Of a stretch of 64,000 nt of DNA, positions 19,414 to 62,483 are shown one piece after another (within the stretch, counting starts at the first letter, position 1; each line of letters opens with the position of its first letter). The notes below the pieces were generated by a model. That model was not told where the DNA came from, did not search any database, and was given only the letters and a program-made list of their open reading frames with translations. Source of the stretch: Rhodosorus marinus CCMP1338. Its lineage: Eukaryota; Plantae; Rhodophyta. The position numbers and the translations under genes are program-made. The stretch covers positions 992,001-1,056,000 of the forward strand of contig JAMWBK010000012.1 of assembly GCA_029953675.1 (NCBI GenBank), in the 5' to 3' direction.

Positions 19414-20417
19414 ATGCGCAACATGTTGCGGGTGGAGATAAGTGCGGTGGTTCTTTTCGTTGGTGGTCTTTGTGTCTTTGCCAGCTGTCTTGAACTGTTT
19501 ACTCATCTTGCTCGGTTGGTTGTTGGATACGGCGGGAGGGCTGCCAATGAACTCCATTGGTGTCTCTTTCCTGAGTCGATCCTTCTTCACAAGCAGCGTA
19601 AGTAGTCATCCTCCTCCGCCCTCCGCCTGCCCGTTCTTTTGGCTGAAACGCTTTCCTACTTGGATTGCGTTTGGGGGGGTCGCGATTAGTATGGCGGATC
19701 TTCACTGCTCCGTTCTTTCACGCTGGGTTTCTGCATCTGGTCCTCAACATGTTGGCCTGGTGGCAGATGGGAATTATCCTGGAGAGGATCATGGGATCAC
19801 TTGAGCTTTTGTTTCTGGTGCTAACATCGGCCGTTCTATCTGGTCTGCTGCAAGTCTTCCTCGCTCTTGAAGCCACTCGGATCTTTCATACCAGCTCGGT
19901 TTATTCCTGCACTCTGGGACTTTCCGGAGTTCTGTTCGCCTTGCAGGTGTTCCTTATCAAGGAGCTGGACCTGAATACGCTCAGCGTGTTCGGTCTGTTC
20001 AACATGCCAGCACAGTTGACCGTCTATGTCTCGCTATTTGCGATCCAGCTGTTCTTCCCAAGAGCCAGCTTCCTTGGTCACCTCTGTGGTATCCTAGTTG
20101 GATATTTCTTCTGCATGTTCCCTCCAAGGCTCGCGAGGAATGGTTTCGCAAACATTGAATCAAGCATGAAGCTCGAAGGCATTCCTCTTTGGAGGCCAAG
20201 TCCAGCTTCAGATTCCTTGCCCTACGCGAGTATCGGGAACGCGGACAACCAAGGAGAGAACTGGAGCAACCGATTCAGGGTCTGGTTCTCTTCAGAACAA
20301 GGCGATTCCAGTGAACGAGAAACGTTCCAGGATGAAGTTGAGTTCAGTCCGGTTGGAACCCGATCTGTCAACGTGAGCTCCGTTAGCAGACTTGTTCCTG
20401 AGAAAGAAGAGGCTTGA
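19414..20417 (+). CDS. Rhomboid intramembrane serine protease (RHBDD1/RBL14-like)
   Basis: Intron 19598-19689 gives LWRIFTAPFFHAGFLHLVLNM; catalytic GLSG and SFLGHLCG are intact. Confidence 0.92.
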
Positions 20418-21639: not shown

Positions 21640-22300
21640 CGATGTTGAAGATGATGGAAAAGTCTATTGCATTCGACAACGGAGTGGATGATGATTCTGC
21701 TTATGATCTGTTAGATGCTGGGCATTGATGACAGCGTTTCTTAGTTCAGACTCTTTCAGTGAGGAGGATTGAGATCACTTGCATAGGCCAACTATATTAG
21801 ATGATGATGATGATGCTGCTCATGGTCAGTCAGATATTTCACGTCGATCACAGCGCTTCTCTCAAGTTCACTCTTTCAGTGAAGAGGATTGAGTTCACTC
21901 GCATAAGCAGATTACTCCCAAACGTCCCAAACGCCATTGCATCGATGTTGAAAATGGTGAACCAGTCAAATTTGCATTTCACACCAGATTGGCATGATGA
22001 TGATGACGCTGCTCATGGTCTGCAAGATACTCCACATCAATCACAGCGCTTCTCATTTTGGATTCTTTCAGTGAAGAGAATTGAGATCACTTTCATAAGC
22101 AAAATTCCTCCCAAACGTCCCAAACGCTATTGCCTCCAATGTGAAGACGGTTAACTAGTCAATTTGCATTTCACTCCAGATTGGATGATGACGATGATGA
22201 CGATGACAATGATGATGCTGCTCAGGGCTTGTCAGATATATCACATCAATCACAGCGCTTATCAGCTTAGACTCTTTGAGTGAAGAGCATTGAGGTCATT
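21640..22300 (+). repeat. Diverged tandem array of ~190-bp units, each opening with a (GAT)n run
   Basis: Units start near 21686, 21800, 21994 and 22185 and share gctgctcatggtc, cacagcgcttc, ctctttcagtgaagag.attgag and tcccaaacgtcccaaacgc. Confidence 0.85.
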
Positions 22301-22359
22301 AACTACCGAACTTTTTTTTGAAAGTTTGATGAACGTTTTTGTTGTCATGATCACGAAGC

Positions 22360-23050
22360 TTCTAGTCGATAGTAAATGGAGATGGAAGGTGGTGTGATGG
22401 TAGAGAGATCCATCCGTGTGTGTGTGTATGTGTGAGATCGATCGTGAAGGAGGAAAGAAGAGGAGGGTGGAAGACATCGTGCGGGATAGAGGAGATGACT
22501 TGATTGGAAAGTGGTATTGATGAGAGTGTAGATAGACGTTTTCGTTTGCTTGTGGTGGTGAATTGGAGTGAGGAAGGAGAGGGAGTGCGTGATTGAATTG
22601 AGAGAGGAGATGGGGATGTAGTTTTTGGTATATTGGTATTGGTATTGGAAAGTGGATGGGAGTGAAGGAGGAGGGAGACTGAGAGATTGAGATCGGGAGT
22701 TGTGGGGGGGGTGGGGAAGTAGGAGAGTGGTAGTTTTGTATTGATATCGGAAAGTGGATGGGAGTGAAGGAGGGAGGGAGGGTGGGAAAGGACGGGTAGG
22801 TAATTTTTGGTATTGGTAGTGGAATGTGGATGGGAATGTGAGGAGGCAGAGAGTGAGTGAATGAATTGGGGAGAGGGGGTGGAGGAAGGAGGAGGTTGGT
22901 ATTTTTGTATTGGTATTGATGGGAAGGATATAGGCTGTGGTTTGAATACTGGTTTCCTTCTGGTGATTTGATCGGGGGTGGTGGTGGTGGTGGTTTGTTT
23001 GGAGGGAATGTGGAAAGTGGATTGGAGTGAGGAAGGAGTGAGCGTGAGTG
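22360..23050 (+). repeat. C-depleted, G/T/A-rich low-complexity tract with a degenerate ggaaagtggatgggagtgaaggag motif
   Basis: About 5-6 motif copies (near 22505, 22645, 22750, 22820, 23010); cytosine is almost absent on the + strand. Confidence 0.8.
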
Positions 23051-23085
23051 ATTGAATGTTGTGCTGGGAAGAGGGGGTGGAGAAG

Positions 23086-24166
23086 ATGGTGGAAAGTTGT
23101 GGATTTGTTTTTGATGTTGGTGTTTGGAGAAGACGGAATGTTGGGGTTGGAGTGAAGCGATGTGGGGTGGATCGTAGTGCAAAGGTGTGGGCTGGTGGTG
23201 GTCGGGGTGGGGGTGCGTGGCTGCCGCCTCGAGGAGGAGGCTTTTTTGGACGATTTGGTGGCGATGGGGAGGGTGGCAAGCCAAACGATCGGTTCGTTTT
23301 GGGTTTGGGAATCGTTGGAGGTGTTGAGATTGCCAGATCGATTGAGAAAAGGTGAGCTCGTTCGGAAAACGCTTCTTCTTTTATGAATTTCGTGTATTGC
23401 TGAAGTATTGAACCTCAGTTTTTGTTTGCTACCTTTTTCTGGAACAAGTGAGGGGCTGGGTAGGCGTAATTTGAGCTGGCCGTACATCCTCATCGGCTTG
23501 AACATACTTGCGTTTATTTTGCAAGGTTTCATGGGGGATAAGCTGACGATGATGGGTGCCAAGGTGAATCGGGCTATTGCTGAGGGCCAGTTCTATCGGC
23601 TGCTAACGTCGATGTTCCTTCACGGATCTCTGGGACATCTCCTGGTGAATAGCCTGAGCACCTACAGCATCGGGCCGAGCGTGGAGAGCTGGTTTGGGAA
23701 AAGGCGGTTCATCGCACTCTACCTTTTCTCTGGCTTTTGCGGAAACCTGATGAGCTTCTACTTCCTCCCTCAGCCCTCCATTGGCGCTTCCGGCGCAGTC
23801 TTTGGACTCCTTGGTGCCCTCGCGTTCTTCCTTCTCCGACATCGAGGTCTCATACGAGGATCAGAACGCAATCTTACGAGGTTTGCATACGTGATTGCGA
23901 TTAACTTTGCCATGGTAGGAATCTCCACTCATTGTACTACCACCTACTCCTGTTCCGAAACGACAATACCCTCTAACCGACGTCTTTATGAACTTCTTCA
24001 GGGGCTCTCACCCAACTCTCAGATCGATAATTTCGGACACCTCGGAGGTCTCCTTGGAGGTGTTATGTTCTCCTACCTAATCGGTCCAAACCTCACCATC
24101 GAACGCGTCAGAGGCAGACCTGTCCTAGTCGACCGACCGCTGCTCACCCAGGCCATCCGTAAATGA
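23086..24166 (+). CDS. Plastid rhomboid protease (RBL10-like)
   Basis: Transit-like MVESCGFVFDVG...; donor at 23352; intron 23915-24001; YRLLTSMFLHGSLGHLLVN, IGASGAVFG and IDNFGHLGG. Confidence 0.92.
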
Positions 24167-27013: not shown

Positions 27014-29195
27014 ATGGTGGGGTTTGTCCAGGGCGGTACCCTGTTGGTACCGAATTTGAAGGGGCTGGGGGGGAAGGTTGGGGTGTGTTCCGGGTATGAT
27101 TTTCGAGGGAGGCTGAGACCGGTTGTTGGATCGCTGGAGGTCGAGGACGCTTCTGTGAGGCAGGCGTCTGTGGGTTGTGTGGATGGCGAGGAAGCAAGAT
27201 CTGGAACGTCGTTTGTAGACATTTATGACACGACGCTGAGAGATGGGTCGCAGGGTGAGGGAATTTCGTTGGCTGTGGAGGACAAGCTGCGAATTGCACA
27301 GAAGTTGGATGATTTTGGAGTGTCCTATATTGAAGGAGGATGGCCTGGATCAAACCCCAAGGATGCGGAATTTTTCGCGGCGATGAAGGAGATCAAGCTG
27401 AAATCTGCAAAGCTGTGCGCGTTTGGAAGCACGCGGTATAAGCACGTGACTTGTGCAGAGGATGCCAACATTCGTGCCCTTATTGAGGCACAGACTCCTG
27501 TCGTGACGATTGTGGGTAAGGCCTGGGACATGCAGGTTGAAGTCGTGCTTGAGGCGTCACTTGAGGAGAACCTGGCGATGATATCAGAGTCCGTCAGCTA
27601 TTTAAAGAAAAGAGGGAAGGAGGTCATGCTCGATGCCGAACACTTTTTCGACGGGTATTTGGCCAATCCAGCCTACGCTATGAGATGCCTCGATGCGGCC
27701 GGTGATGCAGGTGCGGACGTCGTAGTCCTCTGCGACACGAACGGTGGCTCGTCCCCGTGGGAGATAGGTCGGATTACCTTCGAAGTCGCTCGACATGTGG
27801 CTTGCAGGGTTGGAATCCACGCGCACAACGACATGGAGCTCGCTGTGGCCAACTCTCTCGCCGCGGTTAGGTCGGGTGCTTCTGTTGTGCAAGGGACAGC
27901 GAACGGATACGGGGAGAGAACCGGGAATGCGAACCTCATGAGCATCATGCCAGCTCTGCAGCTCAAGCTCGGGTACAAGTGCCTTCCAGAGAACAGCCTA
28001 GGCGGTCTTACCGAGCTCAGCAGGTTCATTGACGAGCAGGCAAATCGACCACACGTCACCTCGCGCCCGTTCGTAGGGAGCTCCGCCTTTGCACATAAGG
28101 GAGGCCTGCACGTCGCAGCGGTGATGAAGAATGAAAACACCTATCAACATATCGATCCTAAAGCTGTCGGTAAGGATTTCCGCTTTTCCAGTATACAGCT
28201 TCTTTCCAGTATATAGGTCCCTCAGAAGCACACCCCCCATTGCCTCTGGCGTTTGAGGGGACCGTTTCCGATTTCAAATCGAGGTTGCCTGCTGTCAAAT
28301 GTTCTGGTTCATTTCTTAGTCCTCCACCTTAACAGCGCAGCTTACTCGTGTATGGAACCGACCTGCGTGATCTTGAACAGGGAACCAGAAGCGCGTATTG
28401 GTTTCTGAACTCTCCGGACGAGGCAATATTGTACAAAAGGCTCAGGATTTGGGTCTCCTAAAGTCTGGAGAGGTGGTAGATGACGCGTGGAAACGCCGAT
28501 CGAAAGCCATCCTGCAGAGGATCAAAGAGCTGGAGAACCAGGGCTATACCTTTGAGGGCGCAGAGGCGAGCGTTGAGCTTATGATTAGGCGATCCTTGCC
28601 TGGCTATGAAGCTCCGTTCGAGCTTGTTGATTTCACTATTGTGTCCGGCAACAAGAAGGTAAGTGTGCAGGAGGGCCTGACTTTGTGAGCAAAAACTCTT
28701 TTCCTGCTCGGCTGGTGCGGATGTGGTCCTCAGTTCTGGCTTTTATCTTTTCTCTTTGCTGTTCGCCTTTTTCAGGAGATGGATGCGCGGGACCTAATCC
28801 CGTTCAGCGAGTCCCAGAGCTCCCAGGCGACAGTGAAGATGCGTGTGGTGACAGAGTGCACAGACGAGGATGGATGCCCTTTTGTGGAGACGTTTGAGGG
28901 ATCCGAGGGAAATGGACCGGTGAACGCGTTGAACAAGGCCATGATGAAGGCGCTAACTTCTGTATTTCCGTCAGTTCAAGCACTCACTCTGATCGATTAC
29001 AAGGTTCGTATTCTTGACAACGACATGGCAAGCGAGGCAACCACGAGGGTCATGATCGAGTTTATGGACGAAGAGCTCAAGCGCAAGTGGAGTTCAGTCT
29101 CTGCTCATCCCAACATCATCGTGGCAAGTGTAAACGCGCTTATGGACGGCTATGAGTATGGAATGCTCCTTAGGACGAATCCAACTCCAGGCTGA
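27014..29195 (+). CDS. cimA: Citramalate synthase, bacterial/cyanobacterial CimA type (TIGR00977-like), with plastid transit peptide
   Basis: YDTTLRDGSQGEG, YIEGGWPGSNPKD, LDAEHFFDG, HAHND, GTANGYGERTGNANL, SAFAHKGGLH, VSELSGRGN, GPVNAL, DYKVRIL. Introns 28170-28380 and 28659-28775; N-terminus MVGFV. Confidence 0.9.
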
Positions 29196-36419: not shown

Positions 36420-37195
36420 TTCCCTCTGTGAAAGGCGCCCGAACCCGACGACATACGCGGATCTTGAACGTGACATAGCGCGAACTTCGGCCTATCGTAA
36501 TGCGAGCCAGTCTTGAAATTGAACGTGAGAACCCCTTGCCTGTCGCGCCGTGGGCCTCGTGGTCACCTCTGACTATAAGCGCCGTTCCACGTACTTTGAT
36601 CTTCCTGTTCCTAGTCCTCAGGCGAGTCGTTATTTGCCGGCTGCGGGAGTGCGCCGTGGATTTGCCGCTGCCAGTATGAGTTGAAATATGCGCAGGCTTT
36701 GTCTTCCCCAGGGATGCGTGTCTCGGCTCTAGCTCATCGCCCGGTACCTCTGGTGATTGAGTGCTTTGGGTTTGTGGATTCTTGGTTCTCATTGGCTTCG
36801 GGATGAGGATTTTGGCCAGGTTTGCTCAAGGCCTGCAATAGTTCCATTCGTAGCCCGGGGGGTCCAGAACAGCGTCCACGACGGGAGGTTCGGAGTAAAT
36901 TCCCAGATCAGACTCTCTGAGCGTCAGTTCAATGCAAAATATTGAAACGATGCTACATCATGTGTCTATAGATACGTGCTCTTCTTGCGGGAGGTGATCT
37001 CCAGAACCGTGAAAAGGATCGAAAAATGGCAGCGAACACCCTGACCGTATGCCCGGAGTTTTTACCCGTTTTAAAATTTCTTGCTGTGGCGTATTAACGC
37101 TGCTTTGATGTTGGAGGCGCACGATGTTCGCCGCCGCGCTTAGTCTTTTGTTTCCCTCGGGTTTTTTCAGTCTCCAAGTAAACAAATTCATCAAA
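36420..37195 (+). mobile_element. Old 'family A' CRE fragments (internal 36420-36800; 3' tail ~37085-37195)
   Basis: VKGARTRRHTRILN and PLVIECFGF match ORF 51857-53083; the tail reads cagtctccaagtaaacaaattcat. Confidence 0.8.
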
Positions 37196-37664: not shown

Positions 37665-40600
37665 TTATAAGGTGCACATACAGAAACCTTCTGGATCTAA
37701 CCTCACAGTCTGGGGTTTTCATGCAGAAGAACAACATAATGGTCAGATGATCAGATAAGTGAAAAGCAAGGTAGGGACAATTCCCCCCGTAATTGATACG
37801 GTTGCCGTCGAGAAGAGCTCATCTGCTCTAAACACTTACAGCGCAACTTCTTTCCTTTCCCCAGTCCTCAAGCGCTTTGCATGTACCGGTCACTTTGTCG
37901 ATGCACTGGCCTTCAGGACAATCTAGACACCAGCAAGCCCCAGTGCTCTTTAGAATGAAAGGTGTCTATGGCGTGGATACAGTAGGTGATTAGAGGAAGG
38001 AGGTGGAAGAGGTCAGATACGTATTTGGATTGATTCAGGAAACTTTTTCGTATCGAGAGGAAATACATACCGCGTCGGGGTGGCAAAACAACTTGGCAAA
38101 CCTATCAAGAGTATCACAGGCCTTGGTCCTGAAATTAATGCAGGTGCTCTCATGGTCGCCGCAACACTGACACTTTCCTGGCTCATCTTCATCTAAGAAC
38201 ACGATACCTTGCTGTTTGCGTAAGGGTACATAGAAAACGTGATACCGTTCGCAGTTAGCTCTCAGGAAAGGACTTCATTTCTCTGTATTGTCTTCCTTAC
38301 CGGAAAACCGGGACAGGTGAGATGCACTGAGATGCCGGACGCAATTGGTTGACATTCACCATTCGGCGTGACGCAATTATCAACGGAATCACAACAGCGG
38401 CATTCATAATTTTGTTGTGAATCCGCGTAGGGATTCCCGCAGCCCGAACTTTTTTTGAAGTCCGCCAACTTGGTACACTGCCTTGGGGAAAAAAGCTCGC
38501 CAGGCAGGAAACAAGAGTCAGCGGACTCACCAGCAACTTTACAACAACCGCATTGACCACCGTCAGTGAATACTACCTGCTCTCATCACAAACAGCAGGT
38601 TCACGGAACATCTGAATGAGGTTACGGAGAGGGGTGCATGGAAAAATGCAAATAAGAATCGTTTGCTGAGTATTCTCACTTCAGAGCTGCTGCACGTAGT
38701 TGACGAGTACGCTGAAGTGCTGACACAGGTTGCATTGTCTATTCCACCGTCCAAGTTCACACAGTCGCTAGAGTCCGCCCCGCAGCACTCGCATTTTTCC
38801 GTGTTTTCATTCTTTACTGCAAGCTGGAAACGGCACAAGGGCGAATTTCGCGGTCAGTTTTAAACACATGGAATGTTGAGCAAAACGAAATTGTCCAAAA
38901 CTTACGACGTGTTGCGGGATTTTCGGCAAGCTCTCGCAGACTGCTTTTGCGCTATCTGATGACACTGACACGCAAGTGTTACTATCGTCCAGGCATTGAT
39001 CGGCTGGGCATCTAGAAACGCAATGGCAAAACCCATTCTCGTCCGGCGCACCGAGTGACGCACCGAGTTCTGAACCGCAAAACCCGGCAGCATACTTGTC
39101 ATTGTCAATGCATTGACCGAAAATGACGCACTGGTCCTCCCCAACCGCAGTTCTGCAGCATTCACAGTTGCCGGAAGCGTCGGCGTGCGGAAAAAGTCCG
39201 TTGCAGTTGGAACTCGAAAAAGCTTGGCGTGAGACGCATTGTTGATCAGCATTGACACAAGAATTTTCATTATCTCCAACACCTGGGCAACACTCGCAGG
39301 CTCCGGGGGCCGCCTTGGCAGGCGCGAACTGAAATAGAGGTAAGGCACCCAAAGTGTTATGTGAGTCGGAGTTCGTTTCTAGTCCTCCATGGGGCACAGG
39401 TCGGAGGATTCGGGGAAGGAAATCGAGGGAAGACCGCACAGGAAAATCCGTGAAGATTTTCAACTGCGAAATTCACGAATTGATTTCCGAAGTTGAGTGC
39501 ATGGAATTTGTCAAAGGCAGTCTTACCTGGCGCCCGAACGGATCGGCTGCTGCTTCGGCATCACAAGCTGTTTTCCTTTCTGCGGGTCCCACACACTTTT
39601 GCTGATCAGTGTCGAAGCAGTGGTCGGGAAGCGAGGCACAACACTGACATAGCCCTTCCGAGTCGGTAATAGCGGACTGTGTTAAGAGGAACCACCAAAC
39701 GAGTTCAGCAGGTCAGATCCTTCAGCAATCATCTGAGATACCCCAGACACGCCCACGCCATGACTGTCCCAGAAGAAGAAAGGGAGAATGATGTTGCTCG
39801 AAGATACTCACGGAAAATGTACAATCCGATCCGAAATCAGCTTCACTAATACACTTGATGCCGCCCGCATCCGAATCAACGGAGAAACATGAGCCTTGTG
39901 GACAGCAGGAACAACTGCCATGGTCGTCCTTGTACAAAAGTGAACCTGGCCCCCCCTACACAAAAATCATCGTAAAGCGGGAAATGGTTATTGAGCCAGG
40001 AGTGCACCCGTCAAAAGAGTCCAGTCGAGGATCAGTGTAGCCTACCGCATCGCAAAACGCAGAGGATTCGAGACTAAGGCATCCCTGGATTGGGTCAAAG
40101 CATTCGTTTTCTCCGCACGCCACCGCTTCACACTGACAAGAATTGTCAGATGGGTCTATGACGGCAACCTGAGAGGATGACGTAAACGTTTAGTTCATGT
40201 ACTTCCAGGTGTGTGACGAGCTTTGTGCGGGCATACCTCGGAGGAACTACATGATTGTGATTCAAAGTCTGAAACCTTTACGCAGCCGTTAGTCTCATCA
40301 ACGCATACATCAGTTTTGCTTGGGTCGCATCTACATCCACAAGCACCAGTATCGGGATCCTTAAACTCTTCCTGAAGAAAGAAGTGGTCCAATCATATTT
40401 TTATCAGAGGGTGCCCGCATTTGTGAAAGCGAACGGAGACTTTGGTCTTACCCCCAGGTCACCGCACGCATAATCGCTCGTTCTCACACACGTGCCGCTG
40501 TCATTGCATGCACTATTAGGGCAACTATCACAGGTCAGCTTCAAAGTGCAGAGAAACTCCTTTCGACCTCCTCCTATCCTCGTTTCGTCGCAGATGCCTT

Positions 40601-41171
40601 CGGTGGTCGTTTGAGGACTGATATATGCCTTTAGTTGTAGTTGCTCATCAACTTGGTTGGGTCCGTTGATGATGGCTCCGGGGGAAGAAACCACCGCAAA
40701 TCCGAGGAACTGGAGATCCGATCCGCAGCAAGGTATCTCTAGCACGGAGATTGCGCTCGGACAGAAGACAAGGCTGGCCTTGTGAACATGCGGTGAATTC
40801 AGACTGGCCACAGTTCGCTTGCGGGTATACCTCGACGATTTGCTGGTGATGGGGTCTCCTTTCTTGTGGACCCCTGCCCTCAGCTTCAATATTGATTCAT
40901 CCGTGCTGGGGACGGTGAACTTGGCGCGAAGGCACGTTCCTCCTGGTCTAGAGCTTGTAGGGGCTCTAACAATAGTTGAGATACAGACCTCCCCGTGTTT
41001 ACTATCAAGACGATCGATAAGATCAAAGCACGCACCCTCGTAACCAAACAGACCCTTCTTAGGGTCTGCGTCACATGTCGTGGCACCCGCCGTAAGCCTT
41101 AAAACGACCATGCTCAGCAGCACGAACGCTGCGAGTCGATGCATGTTTCCGACAAAGGCAGACGCAGACAT
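37665..41171 (-). CDS. Secreted Cys-rich modular protein (~808 aa, 11 exons): signal peptide, unassigned Cys domain and ~13 Cys modules
   Basis: Exons 41171-40452, 40371-40237, 40168-40046, 39955-39812, 39676-39527, 39328-38906, 38823-38680, 38576-38301, 38211-38071, 37965-37840, 37709-37665. All are multiples of 3 with GT-AG ends and no stops. Hydrophobic N-terminus MHRLAAFVLLSMVVLRLTAGA. Confidence 0.85.
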
Positions 41172-41288: not shown

Positions 41289-42500
41289 TCGCCAAACTCA
41301 ATCGATTTGGTCTGCACAGACTGAAACCCATTGAGTCTCCGAATTAGCAGATTACAGATTCATGCTTCATTCATTCTCACCGGCTCGAGTTTGACAGACT
41401 ATGAGGGCGAACATAAAAAAGCAAACACTTTTTTCTTGTTCGACGGCAAGACGCTTGAGCCGCACCAAACCAACACAGGTGCCAATCACTTCTCACGTTG
41501 TGGATGTACATATCAAAATAAAAACCGCCGGAGGGCCCCACCCCTTATGTGTCAATGTCGCAGCACTGCTCTGAAGCTATCGCGCAATAATACTCAGACG
41601 ACCCCGCTCCCTTCTCCGTTCCCGTCCATCTAATTCTCAGCGAATGACGCGCCTCGGCGATACCCCTCTAAAATTGTCATGTGCTCGTTCATTAGTTGAT
41701 AATCATCAACGCAGTCGGGCCAATCTGAAAATTCGCCTATCGTCTTTGTCCATCCAAAGCTAGATTCTCTCCTAAGAATTCGGATCCGTACATTCAAGTG
41801 GCTTATGGCCCCCGCACTCAGAGAAAAACCAATCCACCGGTGGTTCTGAAATTTGCTCGACCTCAAATCTCATCCGACGGCCGCTCCGTGTACGATTCCA
41901 TCTGATTCCGGTAGAACATGAACTGTTCTGATTCTCGTTGGAGAACTCTTGGTTTGTTCTGCTAAGAAAAAAAAGGACCTATCGTTGAAGAAAAGAATGG
42001 CAAGAATTCCTGGAGCCGCAAATAGGCCTGAGGTAGGTCTGCTAGCTGGGTCGCCTTTGGTGAAAAAGCATCGCGTGCTTGAAACACTGTTCGTACCTAG
42101 CTATCGATGCTGTTCAAACCACCTCCTTACCAATCACGAACGTTCATTTAGTGTTTCAATACGAAAAGGAAATCTGCTTCCATATGAACTAAGGGTCGCC
42201 CGCTGAGCAGAGCGGACCGATTTCTCTAACCGACTTGTACAATGAGGATGGTCTTATTGTAGTAGTTGGTTAGCACGAGGGACTCTGAATCCGTAGACCC
42301 GAGTTCATCTCTCAGTAGGACCTCCCGCAACTTTCAGCGCTTCAGGCTTACATTGGTAGTATGTCCAGTAAAAACGCGTTGGAGAAATCGGTCCGCTCAC
42401 CGCATCGGGCCACCATTCGTTCGTATTGAAGAAGAAGATTTCGTTTTAATGTTGATTCACTAAATGACTATTCTCCTAATTGGCGAGTGGTCTGAAGAGC

Positions 42501-44070: not shown

Positions 44071-45074
44071 CAGAAGCTGCTGGCCCGCGGCCAAGAGCGG
44101 CTGAGAAAAAGGTGCGTCACCTGGCGTTCCCGAGTCATCCCCCAGGTCAGGACTCTCCAGGCCCGTTTGAGCTTAACTTCCGAGTTTGAGATAGAATCGG
44201 GTGCCTATGTTCGAGAGGTGTGAACATGACTCACAAATATGCTTGAGTATTGAAAATAGCATGGGGTGATGGTAATAAGGGGGAATTCGGCTGGAAGGGA
44301 TAACCGAACTAGAGAACTGAGGTCACCCCAAATATCCAAATATCATTTGGGAGGGGGAAGCTGGGAATGCCTTCGGGCATTGGAAATACCAGCTACAGAT
44401 GTTCTCCGACTCAAGGGAGTCGCGAACGTCCTGGTGGACGACAGTGGACAGTAAGGATTCAGTATACGTATATGTGGTATTAGCCAGGACTCCGGCTGGA
44501 CAAGCGCTGGATATCGTCATCGGTGCAGGAGAAAACCCGCGGCACAAGGGGAGTCCGAAAGAGGCACGATACGACGGCCGCTGAAAGCGAGGACTCCGTC
44601 GGCGAGAGACGACCTATTTTCTCCGTCGATGATCAACTATCATCCTCATCACGTTTCAGGGTTATATAGGGTTCAAGCCAAGGACCCTCAAGGCGCTCTA
44701 AAGCAATGCGAAAAGGCCCAGTCTAACGGCTATCGTCATTGTTCAGACCTCCTTCTTCGATAACAACGAACGTGCATTTACTTATTCAATCTTAAACGAA
44801 ATCTTTTGCTTCAATATGAAAGAATGGTTGCCCAATGTTGAGAGCGGACTAATTTCCAGGACTGACTTGCGGAAACACGCGATGCCATGTTGTCAAGTGC
44901 CACACCAGTGAAAAAACGGTTCCAAGCTTCTAGGAACAAAGGTGGACTTTCTCTTCCCGTTTGGGTTTTCGCGTTTACCGGCGGTACTACTGCTACTAAA
45001 TTCGAATTACCTGCCGATGGGACAACCCTAGAATAATGAGTGTGAGTGGGGTAAAAGCCACTCACACACACAGA

Positions 45075-51801: not shown

Positions 51802-53031
51802 ACGAACGAATGGTTTAATCGGAGGCTGAAAAAAAAACCCCGAGGGGAAAAAAAGACTAAGCGCGGCGAAGTACTCGCGCCTCCAACATCAAAGCGGCAT
51901 TCATGCGCCACAGCAGGAAACTTAAGCGGGTAAACAACGATTGAAGACGGTCAGGGCGTTCGCGGAACAACTCCCGAAGCCAGCGAGAACCAACAGAGTC
52001 CGTGAACCCAAAGCACTCAATGATCAGGGGTACCAAGCGATGTGCTAATGCCGAAGCACGAACACCAGGGGAAGACAAAGCCCCCGCGTATTTGATCTCT
52101 TTGCGGCGTCTCATGCTGGTGGCGGCAGATCCACGGCGCTCCCCCGCAGCCGGGAGATAACGACTAGCTTGAGGGTTAGGAACAGCAAGATCAACGTATG
52201 TGGTACGGCGGCTGTCGTCACAGGTGATCACCAGGTCGGCTACACGGCGTTCATCATTTTGAAAGTCCGCGACGGGTAAAGGTTTCTCACGTTCGATTTC
52301 CAGACCGGCTTGCCGGACTATAGGCCGAAGTTCCCGGTATAACAGGTTCAAGATCCGTGTGTGGCGGCGGGTTCGAGCACCTTTCACCGCCGGGCAACTA
52401 GCGAGCAGGTGGGCGCCAAAATCTGCGTTGTCTTCAGTCTGAGAGCAGAGAGGGCACGACGAACCCATCTCGTACGGCCAAGGGGGCTGATGTAAGCCGA
52501 GGTATAAGCGCAGTGAAGTACGCACTTCGAAATCCGACAGTGTGAGTGGCGGAAAGGCTGGTACGGTCATGAGCCACTGAGAGCTAATAACCCCTCCAAG
52601 ACTACGTAGGCGGGCGCGAGCGCGAGAAGATGAGACCATCTGCGCGAGGAGTCGGCCATATGCAGCACGGTGCAAGTCCCAAGAAAGGATATTTTGCAGC
52701 GCATCCGTGCGTGCTTGAGCTCGGCTCCCAGCGCGCTGGGAATCATCAGGAGGATCAACTGGAACTTCTTCTTCTGCGGCAACCACTGGGTCAATCTCCC
52801 CTAGAACAGGTTCAGGCGCAGGACGAATCCCCGGGGCGGAGCCTCGAGAGCGGTCAAATACAGCTCGCCAGTCAGGAAGACGGGGTTGAACGGTTTCGGG
52901 GAGACTAGTACAGGAATTCAGGGCGGTTTGGAGCTCCAGAAACAAGTCTTGGGCGCTTTCCGGTACGCTGGGAAGCAAGACACCCCGCGAGAGGCTCGCC
53001 ATCAAATTGCGGAACTTCGAGATACCCAAGC
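51802..53031 (-). mobile_element. Young 1.23-kb 5'-truncated family A CRE-like element (RT C-terminus, CCHC knuckle, RLE) with an 11-bp TSD
   Basis: Uninterrupted ORF with CPLC..GAHLLASC (CCHC), RRHTRI, RRVADL, YVDLAVPNP, RRKEIKY, PLIIECFG; TSD atatcagtact at 51791-51801 and 53032-53042; (TTCG) tail. Confidence 0.93.
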
Positions 53032-53275
53032 ATATCAGTACTTGGGTCGGACCGGATTTGGGTCTCAACCACTTTGGCTCCAATTTTTATGTCGTCCTGT
53101 TGAGAATTTTATACTTTGCTTTATACTTTTTACAGTGTATCTAAGGCCGTAACAGCCTAGAACACTCCTTTTATGTATAGAACAACCATAATATTTCAAA
53201 ACGCTTTTCAGAACGAATGAAATATTTTCTCTCCGTAGATTTAGGATTTTTTTTGTTTCTCCTAGAAAGCACAGT

Positions 53276-54229: not shown

Positions 54230-55124
54230 AGCGTAAAGCGCTACGCAAATCGTTAAAAGGAACTAAGAACTAGGTAGGGAAGCGGGCAAACCCAGGCGCC
54301 GATGGCGCGCCTCAGCAAACATGCTGCTCGAATATCGCCACAGAGAGACACTTAAACGCCGTAAAAGTTCCAAGTGTTCAACAGGATGCTCAGTGAAACA
54401 TTTCCGCAACCACTCCAAACCCGCCTTCTCCACATGACCAAAGCTCTCCACAATGAAAGGCTGGAATCGGTGGGAGCGACCCTTCAGCGCGAGGCAGACT
54501 GGCCATACTCTCAGCATACCGTCGTTCCTTCACGCGGCGAAGGGCCGAAGCAGCTGCTCCCCGGCGGCGGGCGGCAGCCATGAGATGGGCGCTTGCCACA
54601 GGGCATGTAATCGCGAGGTCAACATATGCTGAGCGTCTAGCGGGAGCATCGGAGGCGAGGAGATCTGCGAAACAACGGGGCGGTGCCCTATCCGAGACCG
54701 ATCTGGGTAGTTCCGATTCCAACTCAACCCTGGTGGCTTTAATAATATAGCCTGATGCGCTACGTAAAACGTAAAAGGAAACTAGGGGCTAGGAAGAAGA
54801 GCATGTAAGCCCAGGCGACGGTGGCGCGCCGCGGCGAGCATAGTGCCAGACTACCGAAAGAGTGCGATACTTAAACGGAGGAGGAGCACCCCTTGTAGAT
54901 CTTGTCCACGGTCCACCATCATTTTGTCCTCAGCGCGTTCACTCGAGCTCTATTGGGCTAGGAAGAAGAGCATGTAAGCCCAGGCGACGGTGGCGCGCCT
55001 CGGCGAGCATGGTGCCTGACTACCGACAGAGTGCGATACTTAAACGGCGGAGGAGCACCCCTTGTAGAACTTGTCCGCGGTCCACCATCATTTTGTCCTC
55101 ACCGCGTTCACCGTAGCTCTATTG
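54230..55124 (-). mobile_element. Family B copies (54230-54722; 54750-55124, including a 169-bp tandem duplication)
   Basis: FADLL..AYVDLAITCP..AARRRGAAASALRRVKERRY; units 54787-54955 and 54956-55124 are near-identical. Confidence 0.85.
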
Positions 55125-55135
55125 CAGGTCGAAAT

Positions 55136-55235
55136 CTGGGCTCATAACCATTGAGCGAGTTTGAGCCAGACCATCTATCCTTTTATCTTGGTTCTTACTC
55201 ATTAGTGATCTCGCACTATCTGAGCTATTCGAACA
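55136..55235 (-). mobile_element. Short LTR-like segment (55235-55150) with a perfect half-tRNAiMet PBS (55149-55136)
   Basis: On the - strand: TGTTCGAATAGC...CTCAAT GGTTATGAGCCCAG. Confidence 0.6.
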
Positions 55236-55699
55236 CCTGGGTGGTCTGTTGAGGGTTTATGGTGTTGGCTTGGGTGAGTTTTAGGTTATCAGAGTGTTTG
55301 TTCGTAGGAGGCGCTGCCTTCCTTTGTCTTTCCCCGTGGCTTTTTGGGTGTGCGGCTTGTCGGCCGGCTTTCTCTCCTTTTCTTGGGGTTGTGATCGAGG
55401 TTTCGGGGTGCTTTGTAATGGGTATTAGCCAGTTTTTGCGGGCTTTTGTGATGAAAATTCTTCTAACCACTCCCTTTTGTGATGGCTGGGGTTTCCCCAC
55501 CTCTTCTGGTGGTCGGCGATGCCGTCTATCCGCTGCATTCAGCACCCAGGCCACTCTCAGCAACTGCGACAAAGCATCGTCGAACGTACTCGTCTTAAAA
55601 CTGACCAGATATCTCATCGTTGCTTCGCAGGAGAACCGCCTGCCCTCGCTAACGGCGTACCTGGAGAAATTTCCTACTAACGCGCGTGCCTCTGTCCTC

Positions 55700-58580
55700 C
55701 CCCCCCCTGATTCTGGGGGGAGCTCTAGACCCGCCCTGCCTTCGGTCGTCCGTCGCGGTCCGCCCCGATCATCCCTCCTAATTCTGCTGTGCCCTTCCAT
55801 GCCTCCGGCCAAAACCCCCCTGGGCTTTCCTTGGGGCCGAATCTTGCCCCTGCGAGTGTCACTCGGCCCTCCTATTCCCAAGTCCTTCGTCGGGGCTCCT
55901 CTGAAGAACGCACGACGGCCATGCCCCTCCATGCCTCCGGCCAAAACCCCCCTGGGCTTTCCTTGGGGCCGAATCTTGCCCCTGCGAGTGTCACTCGGCC
56001 CTCCTATTCCCAAGTCCTTCGTCGGGGCTCCTCTGAAGAACGCACGACGGCCATGCCCCTCCATGCCTCCGGCCAAAACCCCCCTGGGCTTGCCTTGGGG
56101 CCGAATCTTGCCCCTGCGAGTGTCACTCGGCCCTCCTATTCCGAAGTCCTTCGTCGGGGCTCCTCTGAAGAACGCACGCCGGCCATGGTGTGTGTGATGC
56201 CTTCCCCCGTGGCGACCGCGCCCGTAAAATACCGTGATTTCCGCGATACGATGGCCTCCTCACTTGGGGTCGCACCATCTGAGTTCCCCTATGCGTATTT
56301 CACTGGATCTTATGCCTGTTTCCTTGTCACAGAGTCTGCTTATCAATTCCTCACCTCGCTCGTCGCCACCCCTGAGCCTCAGCGCTCTGCCCTTGCAAAC
56401 ATGATACTGACTCGTGCCCACGTCTCATTGTTTGTTGAGTTTGACCGCTTCGACGCAGGTTGGGTTCCCCAGTCGGCGCTGCAGAGCCTCCCTTCCACGC
56501 AAGCTCCTGATATCGCGCTGCAAACTCATGCGGCGCGACTTTCACACCTCCAGTCGCTCTTTGCCCGTTTCATCCCCCGTGGTGTCCTGCGCTCGGCGTT
56601 AGAGAACTTCTTCTCCGCTGAGGCCGCTCTGATGGAAGCTCATCTGGCCTTCGACCTCTCGCAAGCCGACTCCTGGCCGCACCTTCTCCCCTCCTCGGGC
56701 AGCTGCAGTTCCTGATGCCGACATGTCGGCAGGCCCCTAGTGCTCCCCGAATCCGCTGGCTTTGGACACCCTCAGCGAAGACTCCGTTCCTGACAATCCT
56801 GTATCTGCCTTCTTTATTTCCTTTAGTTCCTTCGCTCGTCCGCCACGGAAGCGCCGCCGCCTGAGAAACCCTCAGAGGGCCCCCCACCGGATACCCGCAA
56901 CGCCTCCCCGACTGAGGGGAGGCATGATGTCTTGAGTCCTCTACCCCCGCCCGTGTGTCACCCGTGTCCGTCCTGTTCGCCGATGCCCTCTCCACCTGGC
57001 GCGAGCGTCTTTTCTCGTGGTTCTCTGACCTTGTGGCTTCCTTAACGGTGGTGTTATTCCTTTTTGCCGTCAGAGCCCAGCTGTACGGCTCCCTCGTCGT
57101 CTTCTCAAGCCTCCCGCGATGGTTTTGGACTTTTTATGGCAGGAAGTTTCCAATCACCCTCAATGCTCTCTTCGCTGGGATATCCTTTTCTTTTTCCCTC
57201 GCCTCGATCTCACTTCCTCTACTCTCTCGAGCCCTTCACCTCCCCGCCGTATCCACCCTCGGCGCAAGATGCATTTGTTCCTCTCAGGTGACTTTGCAGA
57301 GCTCGAACGTCTCGACTTTGCTTCCCTCTCTTCCTTCTCTACGTGTTCCCCTTCAGATCTAGTCGCCAACAACGGGCGCGTCACGCTATGGCGGTGATCT
57401 CCGGAGGGCTGCCAGTGTCCTCCAGGAACGGCAACCTGTGGTCGAGTATTCTGACGATCTTGAACCTCCGCTACGCTCGTTTTTCCATGCAGCAGGCTCT
57501 GGGTGGGACCCGTCTTTTGACCGGTTCTGGAAGCGTTCCAAGTAGCGTCCAATGAAGGTGAGCGGCTGGTGGTCACCTCGGAGGCTGTGTGTGAGCTGAT
57601 CCAGAAGTGCTCTAAAGGGTTGTTCTCCTGGGCCCCCGGGTTTGCGGGTGGAATACCTCTTTTTTTGGGGGTGGGACGGTATGAAAGCGTTCGCGTCCAG
57701 GTTGGAGGGAATCGTCAACGGCGATCCTTTTTGTGATCGCGCATGGTTTTTGCTGGGACGGACGCAGCTATGTTTGCTCTCCAAAGCGGGTCACACTGCT
57801 TCGACTCCAGCCCTTCGCCCTAGGGGCTTGGTGGGAGTGGCTTGGTGGGAGTGGTCCGTAAACTGGCAGCTCGATGGTTGGTCCAGATTTTGGTCCCCGA
57901 ATCCCGTCGCTTTTTGGACACGCGCAGTTGGGCGTGGGCTACCGTGGCGTCTGTGAATTGCTATCCGTACTTCTTCGCTCGGATCTAGCCTACTCACCGG
58001 ATTACAAGTTATTATCCGTAGACTTTAGTAATGCTTTTAATCGTGTCTCTCGACCGGCCATTATGAATGTGGTGCGCCAGGTCTCCCGGTTAGCTTTTCC
58101 TTTTTTTCGTAGCCTTTACTATTTGATGGGCCATGGGCCAACTCGTGACACCCTCGGCCCTTCCTCGCACTCCTTTGAGGCGCTTACCGGGGTTCAACAG
58201 CGTGACCCGTTGGTGCACTTTTTGCAGGCCTGTGGGCTTCAGGTCGTCGCTTAACCTGCGCTCAGAGTTCCCGGAGGTCCTCACAATGGGTTACGACCAT
58301 CTCCGCACAATGGCATCCCTCGTCTATCTCGAAGTCAATCATGCGAAGTCGCTCTACTGAGGAGGAGCGGATATTCAAGAGCAGCAGGTCCCCCCGCGTA
58401 TCCGGGATATTTGGCATTGGGAAAGGTTTGTCCACCTGGACATCTCCTATGGGTCCGCGTCGTTCGTGGAGGGTGAGTTGTCGCAGATTCTGAGTAAGCA
58501 CCGCCAGCTGGTCTCGGAGCTCCGTCGGCTGCCTCGCGGGGTTTTTTCTTTCAGCCTCCGATTAAATAAATAATTCATTC
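55700..58580 (+). mobile_element. Internally deleted, decayed CRE/SLACS-clade element (5' region, RT and family A tail)
   Basis: RT motifs QLGVG, VDFSNAFNRVSR, GVQQ(R)DPL and LEVNHAKS; the RT joins directly to the tail gggttttttctttcagcctccgattaaa at 58538. Confidence 0.85.
55789..56184 (+). repeat. 3 x 132-bp (44-aa) tandem repeat in the CRE 5' ORF
   Basis: atgcctccggcc at 55799, 55931 and 56063; unit MPLHASGQNPPGLSLGPNLAPASVTRPSYSQVLRRGSSEERTTA. Confidence 0.95.
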
Positions 58581-59540: not shown

Positions 59541-61913
59541 CGCGCTTAGTGGAAAGAGTATACTTCAAAACATGAGCATACTTTTCACTGGAAGTTTTTC
59601 GCATCGGTCCAATGCCCTTTGCTTTCGGAATTGGCTCAAATTTCGCGAGCTTGTAAGAAGATCCTGGTAGGCAATTGGGACCTGGGGATGGAGCGTCATA
59701 TTCTGTCTGGATAGTCGGGTGCGACTTTAAGGGGGGGGAGGGTGGTAAGGATGCGAAGGGCTCCCGCATATCTGTCGTTTACAGAAAGTTCCGGAATGGT
59801 GGTTAATGCAAAAGGTCGCGTAGCGAAAAATTCATTGCAGTTTTACACCCCGCGAGCATATTGTTGTAGATATTGGGGTCCATAAATCCACCACGAGTAC
59901 TTCGCGCTCGGAGGACGGGATTCCGGTGGCTGGTAGTGAACGCCACCCCGCAGAGCAAGATTCAACATAATAAGTTGAATTCATCTGCTCTACCACGTTT
60001 CAACCACCGAGGGGTGCTGCCATGCGGGACCCTGTCCTACGGATACCGCCACCACCACATGAGAATCCGAACTCAGCCAGTTGGTTTACAATTTGTCAGT
60101 TCTAGAAACACCAGTCCGTAAGGCCTTCACTCACGCCTTGACATATCCCAATGAGTACACGTTGAGCACGACTCTGTTCGGCTCGTGGGTCCCCCGCTCT
60201 CCAACGGGGGAGTCTGTTGTTGAATCCAAAACCCTTGAGCAAAAATACTTGTGCACAACATACCAGTGGAGAGCAGTTGTCTCGATGATTGTTGAGCATA
60301 CACACCCCGCCCGGGACCTCTCCTTGCGATACCGCCTGCACACCAATGATCGTTCGCCGAAGCACCATCGTTGCACAGAACAAAAACCATTTGCGGGGAA
60401 AAATTGATCAATCCGACGAGAAAAAAAGTCTCCGGAACGGAAGTTCATGAAATTACGTAATAATTAAACATAAAATTAGAGCAATCGGCGACTAGTTTCG
60501 TGTCCGATCCAAAGCGTCTCGGACGGAATAAAAAGGACAAAAAAAAAAAAAGTTCTTTATTTGTTCGTCCGAGAACATCGGTCCGATAACGACATATCGG
60601 CGTCCGATATTCCTCATTCAATCAGAAAACAGTGCTTGATGCTCAATCTTCTTCATCTCAGAGGTGGTCTTAATTCAAAATCAAGAGACAGCTTGTCATA
60701 CCGAGAAGTAATTATTATTCAATATCTGGATGGGAGATGATTGATTATTTGACACATGCGTTGATTGATTGAGTAGGGGGGACGTTTTAAATCGGACGAC
60801 CAACAAGACGGGTTTTTTTGAAGGAATTTCAAAACATACGTTAATTCATTTACTTTTTGTATTTTTGTTCTATAGTCTATCCACGAATGAGAATTTATCC
60901 GATAGTTTACGACAGTCTGGTATCTGGTCACAATCATCACCTTCTTATGATAATTTTCAAGATCTTCCAAAGCCCTCCTCCAACTCCTCCTGCTCCTTAA
61001 AAAAAAAATAGTTTTCAACCGATCTTCAAGCGGCTTGTTTTTGGTGGATCCCTTACATGAATTATTCTATATTTTGATCCGCGCGCAAACGTCAGCTCCG
61101 ATCGTGATTTTCTACGATTTCACGATGCACCGAATCAATTTCCCAATACTTTTTGATGCAAATCTCGAGATTGTTACCAAAATATCTGATTTTTTTAAAA
61201 ATACTACTTTTGTCAAGCCAAAAATCAAAAAATAAAATAAAAATTGCAGTTTCCTGAAATGAAGCCTCGTTTTCTTAAACTTTTTCTTTTTTGTCAACCA
61301 ACCAATCCCAACTACCCCTATACCTAAACTGTAAAAATCAAACAGGTAGAATATTATTTATAAATGATAAATGGAATTCGACCGATCCTCTCCACCCCTC
61401 ACTCAGTCTATACAACAGCAGCATTTCATATTGGTTCTGGGACTTTGTTAGTAGCTTACGACTTTCGCAGTCATACGAAGAATGTTTGATAAAGGAGAGA
61501 TCACTATTCGAAGAGAAGGGATGTGGTCTGCCGGAGGAAACATACAAAGTTCCAGCAGCCCCCAACTCAGAAACCAGCAAGGAGCGTTGTTCGTTCCGGC
61601 ACCCCCAAGAGGTGCAAACAACTTGGATTGTGGTCAGTTCAACCAACTCCCTGTTCCCTCCCCCTGGCACTGGAGCAACGGTCAACGGTCTGGAGCGTTT
61701 TGCTGTTTAGTGTTTAGCTCCCAAGGCGACAAAGGAAATGAACTCTTAGGTAAGATTTGGCTAACATCGTTTTCGACAGAACCCATGTTGGTTAGAACGT
61801 AAAGAAAAACAGAGAATGATAAGCATGTGACCATTAGAACGGAGGACGAAAAGGAGACCACGGGGAGGGGGGGGAAAGGAGGGAATGAGGACCTCCGTCC
61901 ATATTGGGGTTTC

Positions 61914-62380
61914 GTTCCCAACAGGCCTTTGGAATCGATCCAATTCGATCAACTTTGATCGAGGCTACTGGACTCAGTAAAATCACTGCTGGATCCTTCG
62001 GTTTGGATAGTATGCTTAACCTGCAGGATGTCCCCTGGGCTCTCCGGTGGATGTTTGTGTGGGTCATCGCTTGGTTTCGCTAAGGAGAAAATATCAACGG
62101 TTTGTCGCGACTAGGGAAACCCCGCGTGACGGACGAGGATAAATTTTGTTCCCAACAGCCCTTAGGAATCGATCCAATTCGATCAACTTTGATCGTGGCT
62201 ACTGGACGCAGTAAAATCACTACTGGATCCTTCGGTTTTGATAGTATGCTTGACCGGCAGGATGTCCCCTGGGCTCTCCGGTGGATGTTTGTGTGGGTCA
62301 TAGCTTGGTTTCGCTAAGGAGAAAATATCAACGGTTTGTCGCGACTTCGGAAACCCCGGGTGACGGACGGGTATAAATAC
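61914..62380 (+). promoter_or_regulatory. 234-bp-period tandem duplication ending at the TATA box (TATAAAT, 62372) of the RTX gene
   Basis: Copies 61914-62135 and 62148-62369 are near-identical; copy 1 is followed by ggataaatt, copy 2 by ggtataaata. Confidence 0.8.
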
Positions 62381-62483
62381 GTCCGCGGATGTGGTGGGCC
62401 GAGCACTAGTTCGTCGCACTTCAGCGTCGGCATTGAGTGTGCGCGAGTGGCTTTTTTGGCAGGCTGTTCTCGAAGGTCTCAAG

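Follow-up and report, generated by a model that had tools for sequence, protein, structure and literature searches.

Introduction

In animals, EGF-like modules are overwhelmingly encoded by phase 1-1 exons and occur in many unrelated proteins, and collagen-type genes carry phase-0 repeat exons (54 bp) that encode Gly-X-Y triplets and derive from duplication of exon-intron units. Red algae are generally described as poor in both introns and genes. Here we analyze a 64,000-nucleotide (nt) stretch of the genome of the red alga Rhodosorus marinus CCMP1338 (positions 992,001 to 1,056,000 of contig JAMWBK010000012.1, assembly GCA_029953675.1; hereafter, the window), which encompasses NDN08_005008, a gene that, under the corrected model given below, encodes a putative secreted protein consisting of an N-terminal head and an array of cysteine (Cys)-rich modules. 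In the sponge aggregation factors, symmetrical exons have been linked to expansion and to possible splicing diversity, with 154 of the 155 introns in phase 1 in the AqAF genes of Amphimedon and phase 0 only in MAFp3 and MAFp4 of Clathria (PMC5400394). The R. marinus genome comprises 31.2 Mb, with 8392 genes and 24,821 introns, and its BRAKER gene models were trained on RNA-seq (PMC10250338). Given the genome average of about three introns per gene, the ten introns of the gene in the window represent a high, not an extraordinary, number for this alga.

We consider it fairly probable that NDN08_005008 is an intact R. marinus gene encoding a secreted protein in which a head is followed by an array of six-Cys modules that grew by duplication of exon-plus-intron units, with a role in the extracellular matrix, in adhesion or in recognition. 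At the sequence level, comparison of gene copies and relatives demonstrates what appears to be a real, intact multi-exon gene that belongs to a species-restricted family, with symmetrical phase-0 module exons and strict conservation of Cys.

Results

A predicted gene of 11 exons and ten phase-0 introns

Three-frame translation of positions 41300-37500 yields a 240-codon open block starting from an ATG, followed by a succession of short, Cys-rich open blocks in changing frames. Joining these blocks at GT...AG sites with a script rebuilds a minus-strand gene that begins with the ATG at 41171, ends with the TAA at 37667-37665 and consists of 11 exons (E1-E11: 720, 135, 123, 144, 150, 423, 144, 276, 141, 126 and 45 nt) and ten introns (80, 68, 90, 135, 198, 82, 103, 89, 105 and 130 nt; range 68-198). 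All ten introns have a GT donor and an AG acceptor, and, since the length of every exon is divisible by three, all ten are in phase 0. Retention of any intron would shift or terminate the reading frame, through either a length not divisible by 3 or an in-frame stop, so that removal of all of them is required to produce the predicted protein of 808 amino acids (aa), which includes 88 Cys. If introns were independent and 45-60% of them were in phase 0, ten out of ten would have P ~0.0003-0.006, an estimate that is not straightforward, as the modules are copies of each other and the introns accordingly are not independent.

An earlier sequence-only reading of this locus had given the coordinates, the exon sizes, the module counts per exon and an example peptide, all of which the script reproduced, and had placed all ten introns between codons, as found here (10/10). 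It had also assigned one or two modules to each of the nine internal exons except for one with three, which agrees with the counts of 1, 1, 1, 1, 3, 1, 2, 1 and 1 that we obtained. The features of the gene, all on the minus strand, are as follows.

37665..41171, minus strand: whole coding span, 11 exons and ten phase-0 GT-AG introns, 808 aa
41171-40452, minus strand: E1, with the signal peptide, head and half-module
41082..41171, minus strand: predicted signal peptide of ~30 aa, MSASAFVGNMHRLAAFVLLSMVVLRLTAGA, as read from the sequence
40530..41081, minus strand: head, ~185 aa with 10 conserved Cys, delineated by homology and a predicted (AlphaFold2) all-beta sandwich
40452..40544, minus strand: incomplete first module at the end of exon 1, ...TCDSCPNSACNDSGTCVRTSDYACGDLG, with four module Cys and without the C-x-C pair
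40237..40371, minus strand: E2, one module; junctions also in the deposited model
40046..40168, minus strand: E3, one module; reconstruction and BRAKER models
39812..39955, minus strand: E4, one module; reconstruction and BRAKER models
39527..39676, minus strand: E5, one module; reconstruction and BRAKER models
38906..39328, minus strand: E6, three modules; the deposited model begins E6 135 nt earlier, at 39463
38680..38823, minus strand: E7, one module, peptide CECCGADSSDCVNLDGGIDNATCVSTSAYSSTTC; in the deposited model, intron 7 is read as coding up to a stop at 38563
38301..38576, minus strand: E8, two modules; reconstruction, paralog alignment and BRAKER
38071..38211, minus strand: E9, one module; reconstruction and paralog comparison
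37840..37965, minus strand: E10, one module; the paralog has an additional in-frame 126-nt tandem copy here
37665..37709, minus strand: E11, 14-aa stub TVRLDPEGFCMCTL and stop; the start of a module, ending just past C-x-C
40372-40451, 40169-40236, 39956-40045, 39677-39811, 39329-39526, minus strand: introns 1-5, from the spliced reconstruction
38824-38905, 38577-38679, 38212-38300, 37966-38070, 37710-37839, minus strand: introns 6-10, from the spliced reconstruction

Correction of the deposited gene model

The deposited NDN08_005008 model (696 aa) shares E1-E5 with the rebuilt one, then takes an acceptor at 39463, gaining 45 Cys-free codons (135 nt that are part of intron 5), and after E7 runs through intron 7 to the stop at 38563, so that E8-E10 are dropped. 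The two models can be compared using a paralogous locus (NDN08_002780, contig JAMWBK010000003.1), which is 87% identical to the window gene across ~4.1 kb, introns included, and encodes a protein with 76% identity to NDN08_005008. In the global alignment of the two copies, the indels within E1-E10 measure 3, 3, 18, 15, 15, 3, 12, 3 and 126 nt, all multiples of three, and those within introns measure 1, 1, 2, 2, 11, 1, 1, 8, 9, 20, 2, 1, 8, 2, 2 and 8 nt; a 4-nt gap scored in E11 is located at the stop codon or beyond it. The paralog retains the splice sites, with the exception of one GT donor that is changed to GC.

Both departures of the deposited model were rejected on this evidence. The 135-nt extension of E6 is open in both copies, with its middle portion translated in different frames; because the 45 additional codons are thus frame-shifted between the paralogs, the extension is not conserved as protein and appears to be non-coding. 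At the 3' end, the intron that is read through contains frame-breaking indels (8 and 9 nt), whereas E8-E10 keep the frame and all Cys in both copies. The junctions themselves are largely recovered by BRAKER: the model of the paralog matches the rebuilt one at introns 3-8, at the donor of intron 1 and at the acceptor of intron 2, and the two BRAKER models together give both ends of introns 1 and 3-8. Both ends of intron 2 are present in the BRAKER model of NDN08_005008 itself, the paralog model using another intron-2 donor. For introns 9 and 10 and for E11, the paralog comparison is the sole source, and E11 is the least certain exon, the paralog keeping the pattern TVRLD..G.C.C.L in frame. We accept the rebuilt 11-exon model because the frames of the paralog indels, the splice sites, the BRAKER junctions and the conservation of E8-E10 all agree.

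Similar problems are apparent in other models of the family. The BRAKER model of NDN08_002780 mis-splices exon 2 (at the GC donor) and the 3' end, and that of a further relative, NDN08_004884, skips an intact-looking module exon (locus positions 4762-4887) and moves into exon 6 in the wrong frame. The deposited models of NDN08_005008, NDN08_002780 and NDN08_004884 are therefore wrong in several places, and the present analysis provides corrections.

Domain architecture of the predicted protein

All family members, described below, have hydrophobic N-termini, and a second ATG of the window gene, at 41144 (MHRLAAFVLL...), is the start that is conserved across all paralogs. The product has no hydrophobic C-terminus, and no membrane anchor is evident, so that, given the predicted signal peptide, the protein is probably secreted, as the sequence-only reading had proposed. 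The signal peptide, the even number of Cys per unit and the marine extracellular setting together point to both secretion and disulfide bonding.

The alignment of the family heads includes 13 invariant columns, eight of which are Cys. An AlphaFold2 model of the head built from seven sequences (predicted template modelling score 0.67) is all-beta, with ten strands, and the head is best described, on the strength of this prediction, only as a disulfide-bonded beta-sandwich without a named family.

The array starts with a 4-Cys half-module in E1 that lacks the C-x-C pair, continues with twelve complete modules in E2-E10 and closes with nothing but a C-x-C, in the E11 stub; the half-module and the twelve complete ones account for the approximately 13 modules that had been counted after the N-terminal domain. 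Six Cys are invariant in the alignments of both the 13 modules of the gene and 29 modules of the family, with the measured spacing C-x-C-x(0-4)-C-x(4-9)-C-x(5-11)-C-x(8-12)-C over a module of ~45 aa. The modules commonly open with D-x-x-G-x-C and have a hydrophobic residue following the fourth Cys. In the acidic array, D+E amount to 15.5% and K+R to 6.3%, and Cys to 13%, compared to 11% for the whole protein. Metallothioneins are small, cytosolic proteins with ~20-30% Cys and without a signal peptide; the product of the window gene, with its 808 aa, 11% Cys, hydrophobic signal sequence and even Cys count in every unit, does not resemble them.

At most module boundaries, the intron is located 1-4 residues past the sixth Cys (10-12 in the case of exons 5 and 6), with 8-14 residues separating it from the next C-x-C. 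Given that the array opens with four Cys and closes with a C-x-C, the disulfide-bonded unit may be offset from the exon by one C-x-C, that is, may consist of C3-C6 together with the next C-x-C; two head Cys located just ahead of the half-module may stand in for its missing pair. Alternatively, the terminal C-x-C pair may bond elsewhere, for example, between molecules. The relative NDN08_002098 likewise ends right after a C-x-C, but there the end is at a duplication breakpoint.

Two domain families without counterparts in Pfam or PDB

Searching Pfam with the whole protein retrieved no family at E<=10, and among searches with the 13 single modules at the same threshold the sole match, for one module, was Cys_rich_VLP at the level of noise (E=0.054; score of 14 bits, cut-off of 27). 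EGF, hEGF, EGF_CA and Laminin_EGF were not matched in Pfam by either the whole protein or the 13 modules, and TNFR_c6, Furin-like/GF_recep_IV, TSP_1, Ldl_recept_a, Kazal, granulin and PSI were not matched in the Pfam and PDB profile searches. Two module profiles compared with PDB sequences gave nothing better than E=6.9, and the head profile had no match among these sequences. The AlphaFold2 model of the module, produced from the 29-module alignment, has a beta-hairpin core and low confidence (predicted local distance difference test score, pLDDT, of 64); Foldseek returned only noise for it (E>8), the model itself being too poor for this result to count. For the head, the weak Foldseek matches were to the C2 domain of Jagged, carbohydrate-binding-like proteins, FN3 and Ig-like domains of adhesins. 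The module and the head are two domain families without a counterpart in Pfam or PDB, in agreement with the sequence-only reading, which did not recognize the module as EGF, TSP, LDLa or another named fold, and a literature search found no mention of a family that combines the head with the modules.

The module could nevertheless be a very divergent version of a known disulfide-rich repeat (EGF-like, TNFR-like or furin/growth-factor-receptor-like) that is beyond recognition by sequence. The presence of six Cys in ~45 aa, the predicted beta-hairpin core and the succession of an N-terminal beta-sandwich and Cys repeats, as in Jagged C2 followed by EGF, are all compatible with such an origin. EGF modules have a two-stranded beta-sheet fold, disulfides that pair as 1-3, 2-4 and 5-6, and the spacing C-x(4-14)-C-x(3-8)-C-x(4-14)-C-x-C-x(8-14)-C; the module of R. 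marinus does not fit this spacing, having the C-x-C pair first and the third Cys at once after, and in the registers tried by eye the order of its Cys suits neither EGF nor TNFR. Together with the negative Pfam and PDB profile searches, this makes a divergent known family an unlikely explanation, albeit one to be taken seriously.

A family of R. marinus proteins

A protein search with the product of the gene retrieved two R. marinus proteins, NDN08_005008 itself and the paralog NDN08_002780, with no transcript-derived protein among the matches and a single member in each cluster. A hidden Markov model (HMM) of the module compared with 1.84 billion representative proteins had four matches at E<=0.001, all of them hypothetical proteins of R. 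marinus (NDN08_005008, NDN08_002098, NDN08_004884 and NDN08_004874), and a word-index protein search with the head profile added NDN08_004882. All family members have a putative signal peptide and the same head, followed by modules. The word-index search with the head profile failed to list known members and so is weak evidence for the absence of the head elsewhere, which is less secure than the absence of the module.

The head also occurs in the window outside this architecture. A 475-aa intronless open reading frame (ORF) at 62391-63818 on the plus strand, with a probable ATG at 62484 and a signal-like N-terminus, contains a region with 25% identity to the head of the gene over 142 aa (E=5e-7), has no modules, and in place of these carries a tail of RTX calcium-binding nonapeptide repeats (PF00353, E=1e-37), which are unusual in eukaryotes. 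A word-index search with the head of this ORF gave no match, not even to its own protein or deposited model, and thus says little about absence. A 234-bp unit is present in two copies (93%) at 61910-62378, directly upstream of the ORF.

Growth of the module arrays by exon-plus-intron duplication

The exon structures of the relatives, obtained by mapping the deposited proteins onto their own loci, repeat the layout of the window gene. NDN08_002098 consists of 15 exons, with all 14 introns in phase 0, one module in each of E2-E14 (108-141 nt), a 12-aa stub as E15 and introns at all module boundaries. In NDN08_004874, the module exons alternate between 126 and 117 nt and the introns between 72 and 84 nt, and the first 13 introns, that is, those throughout the module array, are in phase 0. 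Relative to the Cys framework, the intron positions in the relatives are those of the window gene, in which 10 of 13 junctions between neighboring repeat units bear an intron at the same relative position. Given that the heads are only ~25% identical, the layout with one intron per module predates the diversification of the family.

Several relatives retain units of exons and introns that were duplicated recently. A 399-bp unit, which encompasses two exons and two introns, occurs in 4.0 tandem copies with 98% identity, in an array that ends within introns, and a 470-bp unit is present twice at 96%. In NDN08_002098, a copy spaced by 904 bp aligns without gaps over 778 bp at 93.7% identity and covers three complete exons with their introns and part of a fourth exon. 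Exon 10 of the paralog NDN08_002780 contains a 126-nt in-frame tandem copy that takes in ~20 nt from the 3' end of intron 9 and lengthens the array by one module, which implies that exons with multiple modules, of the E6 and E8 type, can arise without classical intron loss. Tandem duplication of exons together with their introns is thus directly visible in the relatives and leaves no detectable trace in the window gene, where Tandem Repeats Finder detected no recent internal duplication and the modules share 3-30% of the non-Cys residues and thus appear to be old. Taken together, these sequence comparisons show that the module arrays of the family grew by tandem duplication of exon-plus-intron units, and, because such units persist in relatives at 94-98% identity, introns can be said to have been 'gained' by segmental duplication.

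Under the proposed mechanism, a unit comprising one module exon and its intron would be duplicated in tandem, lengthening the array. The intron lies at the same place in each repeat and always between codons, so that every product of unequal recombination would stay in frame. E6 and E8 could reflect either intron loss or duplications with breakpoints that left no usable intron, as in exon 10 of the paralog. The expectation that the module exons, being symmetrical (0-0), could be duplicated or skipped in frame was borne out in this respect, and the number of modules indeed varies among the family members, through recent exon-plus-intron duplications.

The same symmetry would allow the exons to serve as a splicing cassette, with many isoforms of a recognition protein produced from one gene through the skipping or mutually exclusive inclusion of exons. 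The sequence-only reading had suggested such isoform diversity or, alternatively, allelic diversity; the assembly of a single strain contains the gene. Any skip would preserve the frame, given that the internal exons are all 0-0, and the number of Cys lost with an exon is always a multiple of six, which keeps their parity. BRAKER models of the relatives leave out single module exons, which could represent skipped transcripts or errors of prediction, and an intact-looking equivalent of exon 2 lies within an annotated 340-nt intron of NDN08_004884. However, the introns are short (68-198 nt) and have ordinary, strong GT-AG sites, nothing marks any exon as alternative, the symmetry is fully explained by the history of duplication, and the variation that is observed is between gene copies, not transcripts. 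We regard a splicing function of this kind as quite improbable.

The sequence-only reading had spoken of an exon-shuffling cassette. Exon shuffling proper, whereby the module would be a mobile cassette inserted in unrelated genes, appears highly improbable. Patthy reportedly formulated criteria for exon-shuffled mosaic genes; in the present case, introns match the repeat boundaries and a single phase is used, and the module was not found in unrelated proteins. The domains of the family seem to have recombined at least once, given the head with an RTX tail at 62391-63818, but that ORF is uninterrupted, so that there is no intron at its junction. The four clusters that the module HMM matched among the 1.84e9 representative proteins all consist of R. 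marinus proteins in which the same head is present, and for the searched databases the shuffling claim is largely refuted: the module is found solely behind this head in a handful of R. marinus genes.

Evolution of the two gene copies

Between the window gene and the paralog, the synonymous divergence (Ks) is 0.126 and the non-synonymous divergence (Ka) is 0.104 (Ka/Ks = 0.83). For the head and the modules taken separately, Ka/Ks is 1.12 and 0.71, respectively, and the introns have diverged by 0.088. All 86 aligned Cys codons are kept against 176 non-synonymous changes, with P ~2e-10 under the assumption that Cys codons are as free to change as other codons. In the head, the non-synonymous divergence (13.1%) exceeds that of the flanking non-coding DNA (7.8%; Fisher p = 0.02), a comparison that is weakened by the patchiness of Ks, possibly caused by gene conversion. 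The Cys scaffold of the protein thus appears to be rigid, and the loops and the head to change at about the neutral rate or faster, a pattern compatible with diversifying selection. That the gene is a decaying or non-functional duplicate with a frame kept open by chance, as the Ka/Ks of ~0.8-1.1, the truncated deposited model and the broken or truncated appearance of some relatives might suggest, is very hard to believe in view of a spliced frame open over 808 codons, the retention of 86/86 Cys codons and all but one splice site, and indels that keep the frame throughout E1-E10 and do not in introns.

Genomic surroundings

A segment just downstream of the gene, at 36502-37191, matches dispersed copies around the paralog (2267-2430, 6945-7447, 13804-14305 and 22174-22683 of that locus) with 72-78% identity and in both orientations, and probably represents a repetitive or mobile element at the border of the duplicated segment of ~5.7 kb. 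A segment of ~100 bp upstream of the gene, at 41841-41939, is single in the window and present in about three tandem copies upstream of the paralog (locus positions 9014-9214). Farther upstream, about 3 kb from the gene, is a 5S ribosomal RNA gene at 44109-44231 on the minus strand (Rfam 45.9 bits, E=2e-6); a weak match resembling a transfer RNA at 42250-42323 on the plus strand (32 bits) was not confirmed by ARAGORN.

The GC-rich stretch at 54786-56715 (56-58%) contains tandem repeats (169 bp in two copies; 132 bp in three copies at 98%) and long, overlapping ORFs on both strands; with the adjoining 408-aa ORF at 51857-53083 on the minus strand, which has no Pfam match, it may be a repeat or a mobile element. 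At 22262-23562, long, low-complexity ORFs rich in Pro, Ser, Thr and His occupy three frames of the minus strand, with a strong GC skew of +0.39 over 22-24 kb, and this region looks like simple-sequence DNA rather than a gene. Neighbors at 14447-15055 (minus strand), 19665-20417, 23408-24166 and 27014-28216 (plus strand) comprise a PPIP5K N-terminal domain, two rhomboid-domain ORFs and an HMGL-like gene (isopropylmalate/citramalate synthase type), and these housekeeping neighbors indicate a normal nuclear chromosomal setting.

Discussion

Several observations weigh against the interpretation of NDN08_005008 as an intact gene for a secreted protein of matrix, adhesion or recognition whose array expanded by duplication. 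The junctions, above all those of introns 9-10 and E11, and the expression of the gene are predictions, and the deposited model, which was trained on RNA-seq, differs from the rebuilt one. Within the window gene itself, pairs of introns show no greater similarity than shuffled sequences, and identity between modules shows neither a neighbor effect nor block periodicity along the array, so that duplication in this particular gene is something we infer from the repeat pattern and the relatives. On the structural side, the module model has low confidence (pLDDT 64) and no structural match, and for the head Foldseek returned only generic beta-sandwiches (best E 7e-3, template modelling (TM) score <=0.29). 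Divergence from the paralog is patchy (Ks of 0.04-0.35 per exon), and a Ka/Ks near 1 could signify relaxed constraint instead of diversification. Finally, the function is wholly inferred.

With these reservations, an extracellular matrix, cell-surface adhesion or recognition protein is the most likely identity of the product. In such a protein, the disulfide-locked acidic modules would form an extended stalk, with the fast-evolving head as the binding end. A more ambitious proposal, which we put forward as a speculation with a rather small chance of being correct, is that the family constitutes a red-algal system of recognition or adhesion (between cells, between cells and substrate, or between cells and microbes), in which a diversifying head is borne on a stalk with a new six-Cys fold that is tuned by duplication of exon cassettes, and in which the head was also recombined with an RTX beta-roll stalk. 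If so, this would be an independent, non-animal invention of a variable head on a modular disulfide stalk. Regardless, the species-restricted secreted set provides candidates for the little-known matrix and surface biology of unicellular red algae, and the family offers a clean, datable example from outside animals of a repeat protein and its introns multiplying together.

The likeness to known systems takes several forms, the nearest being animal extracellular proteins with a module on each exon and introns of a single phase, among which the sponge aggregation factors stand out. The similarity to Jagged and Delta (PDB 4cc0 and 5uk5) is one of layout only, with an N-terminal beta-sandwich followed by small disulfide-rich repeats; the head match is not significant (E ~1e-2, TM 0.22-0.24, ~10% identity), and there is no DSL or EGF signature. 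Collagen genes share with the algal genes the long arrays of phase-0 exons, but encode Gly-X-Y triplets rather than disulfide-bonded modules. Like the EGF-repeat proteins of animals, the algal proteins consist of small six-Cys modules in tandem, with one module per symmetrical exon, are predicted to be secreted and have been expanded by exon duplication; unlike the EGF repeats, the algal module is 0-0, is confined to one family, has a different Cys spacing and matches none of the EGF models. The sponge aggregation factors are similar in being lineage-restricted, fast-evolving extracellular repeat proteins with repeat exons of a single phase. They differ in consisting of Calx-beta and Wreath domains, which have no kinship in sequence or fold with the algal module or head, and in that their function in allorecognition and aggregation is experimentally supported, whereas that of the proteins of this red alga, which is not an animal, is deduced. 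Thus, the resemblance to all these systems is architectural, not homologous: the domains are new, the way in which the gene was built and expanded is familiar, and the lineage in which this occurred is unusual.

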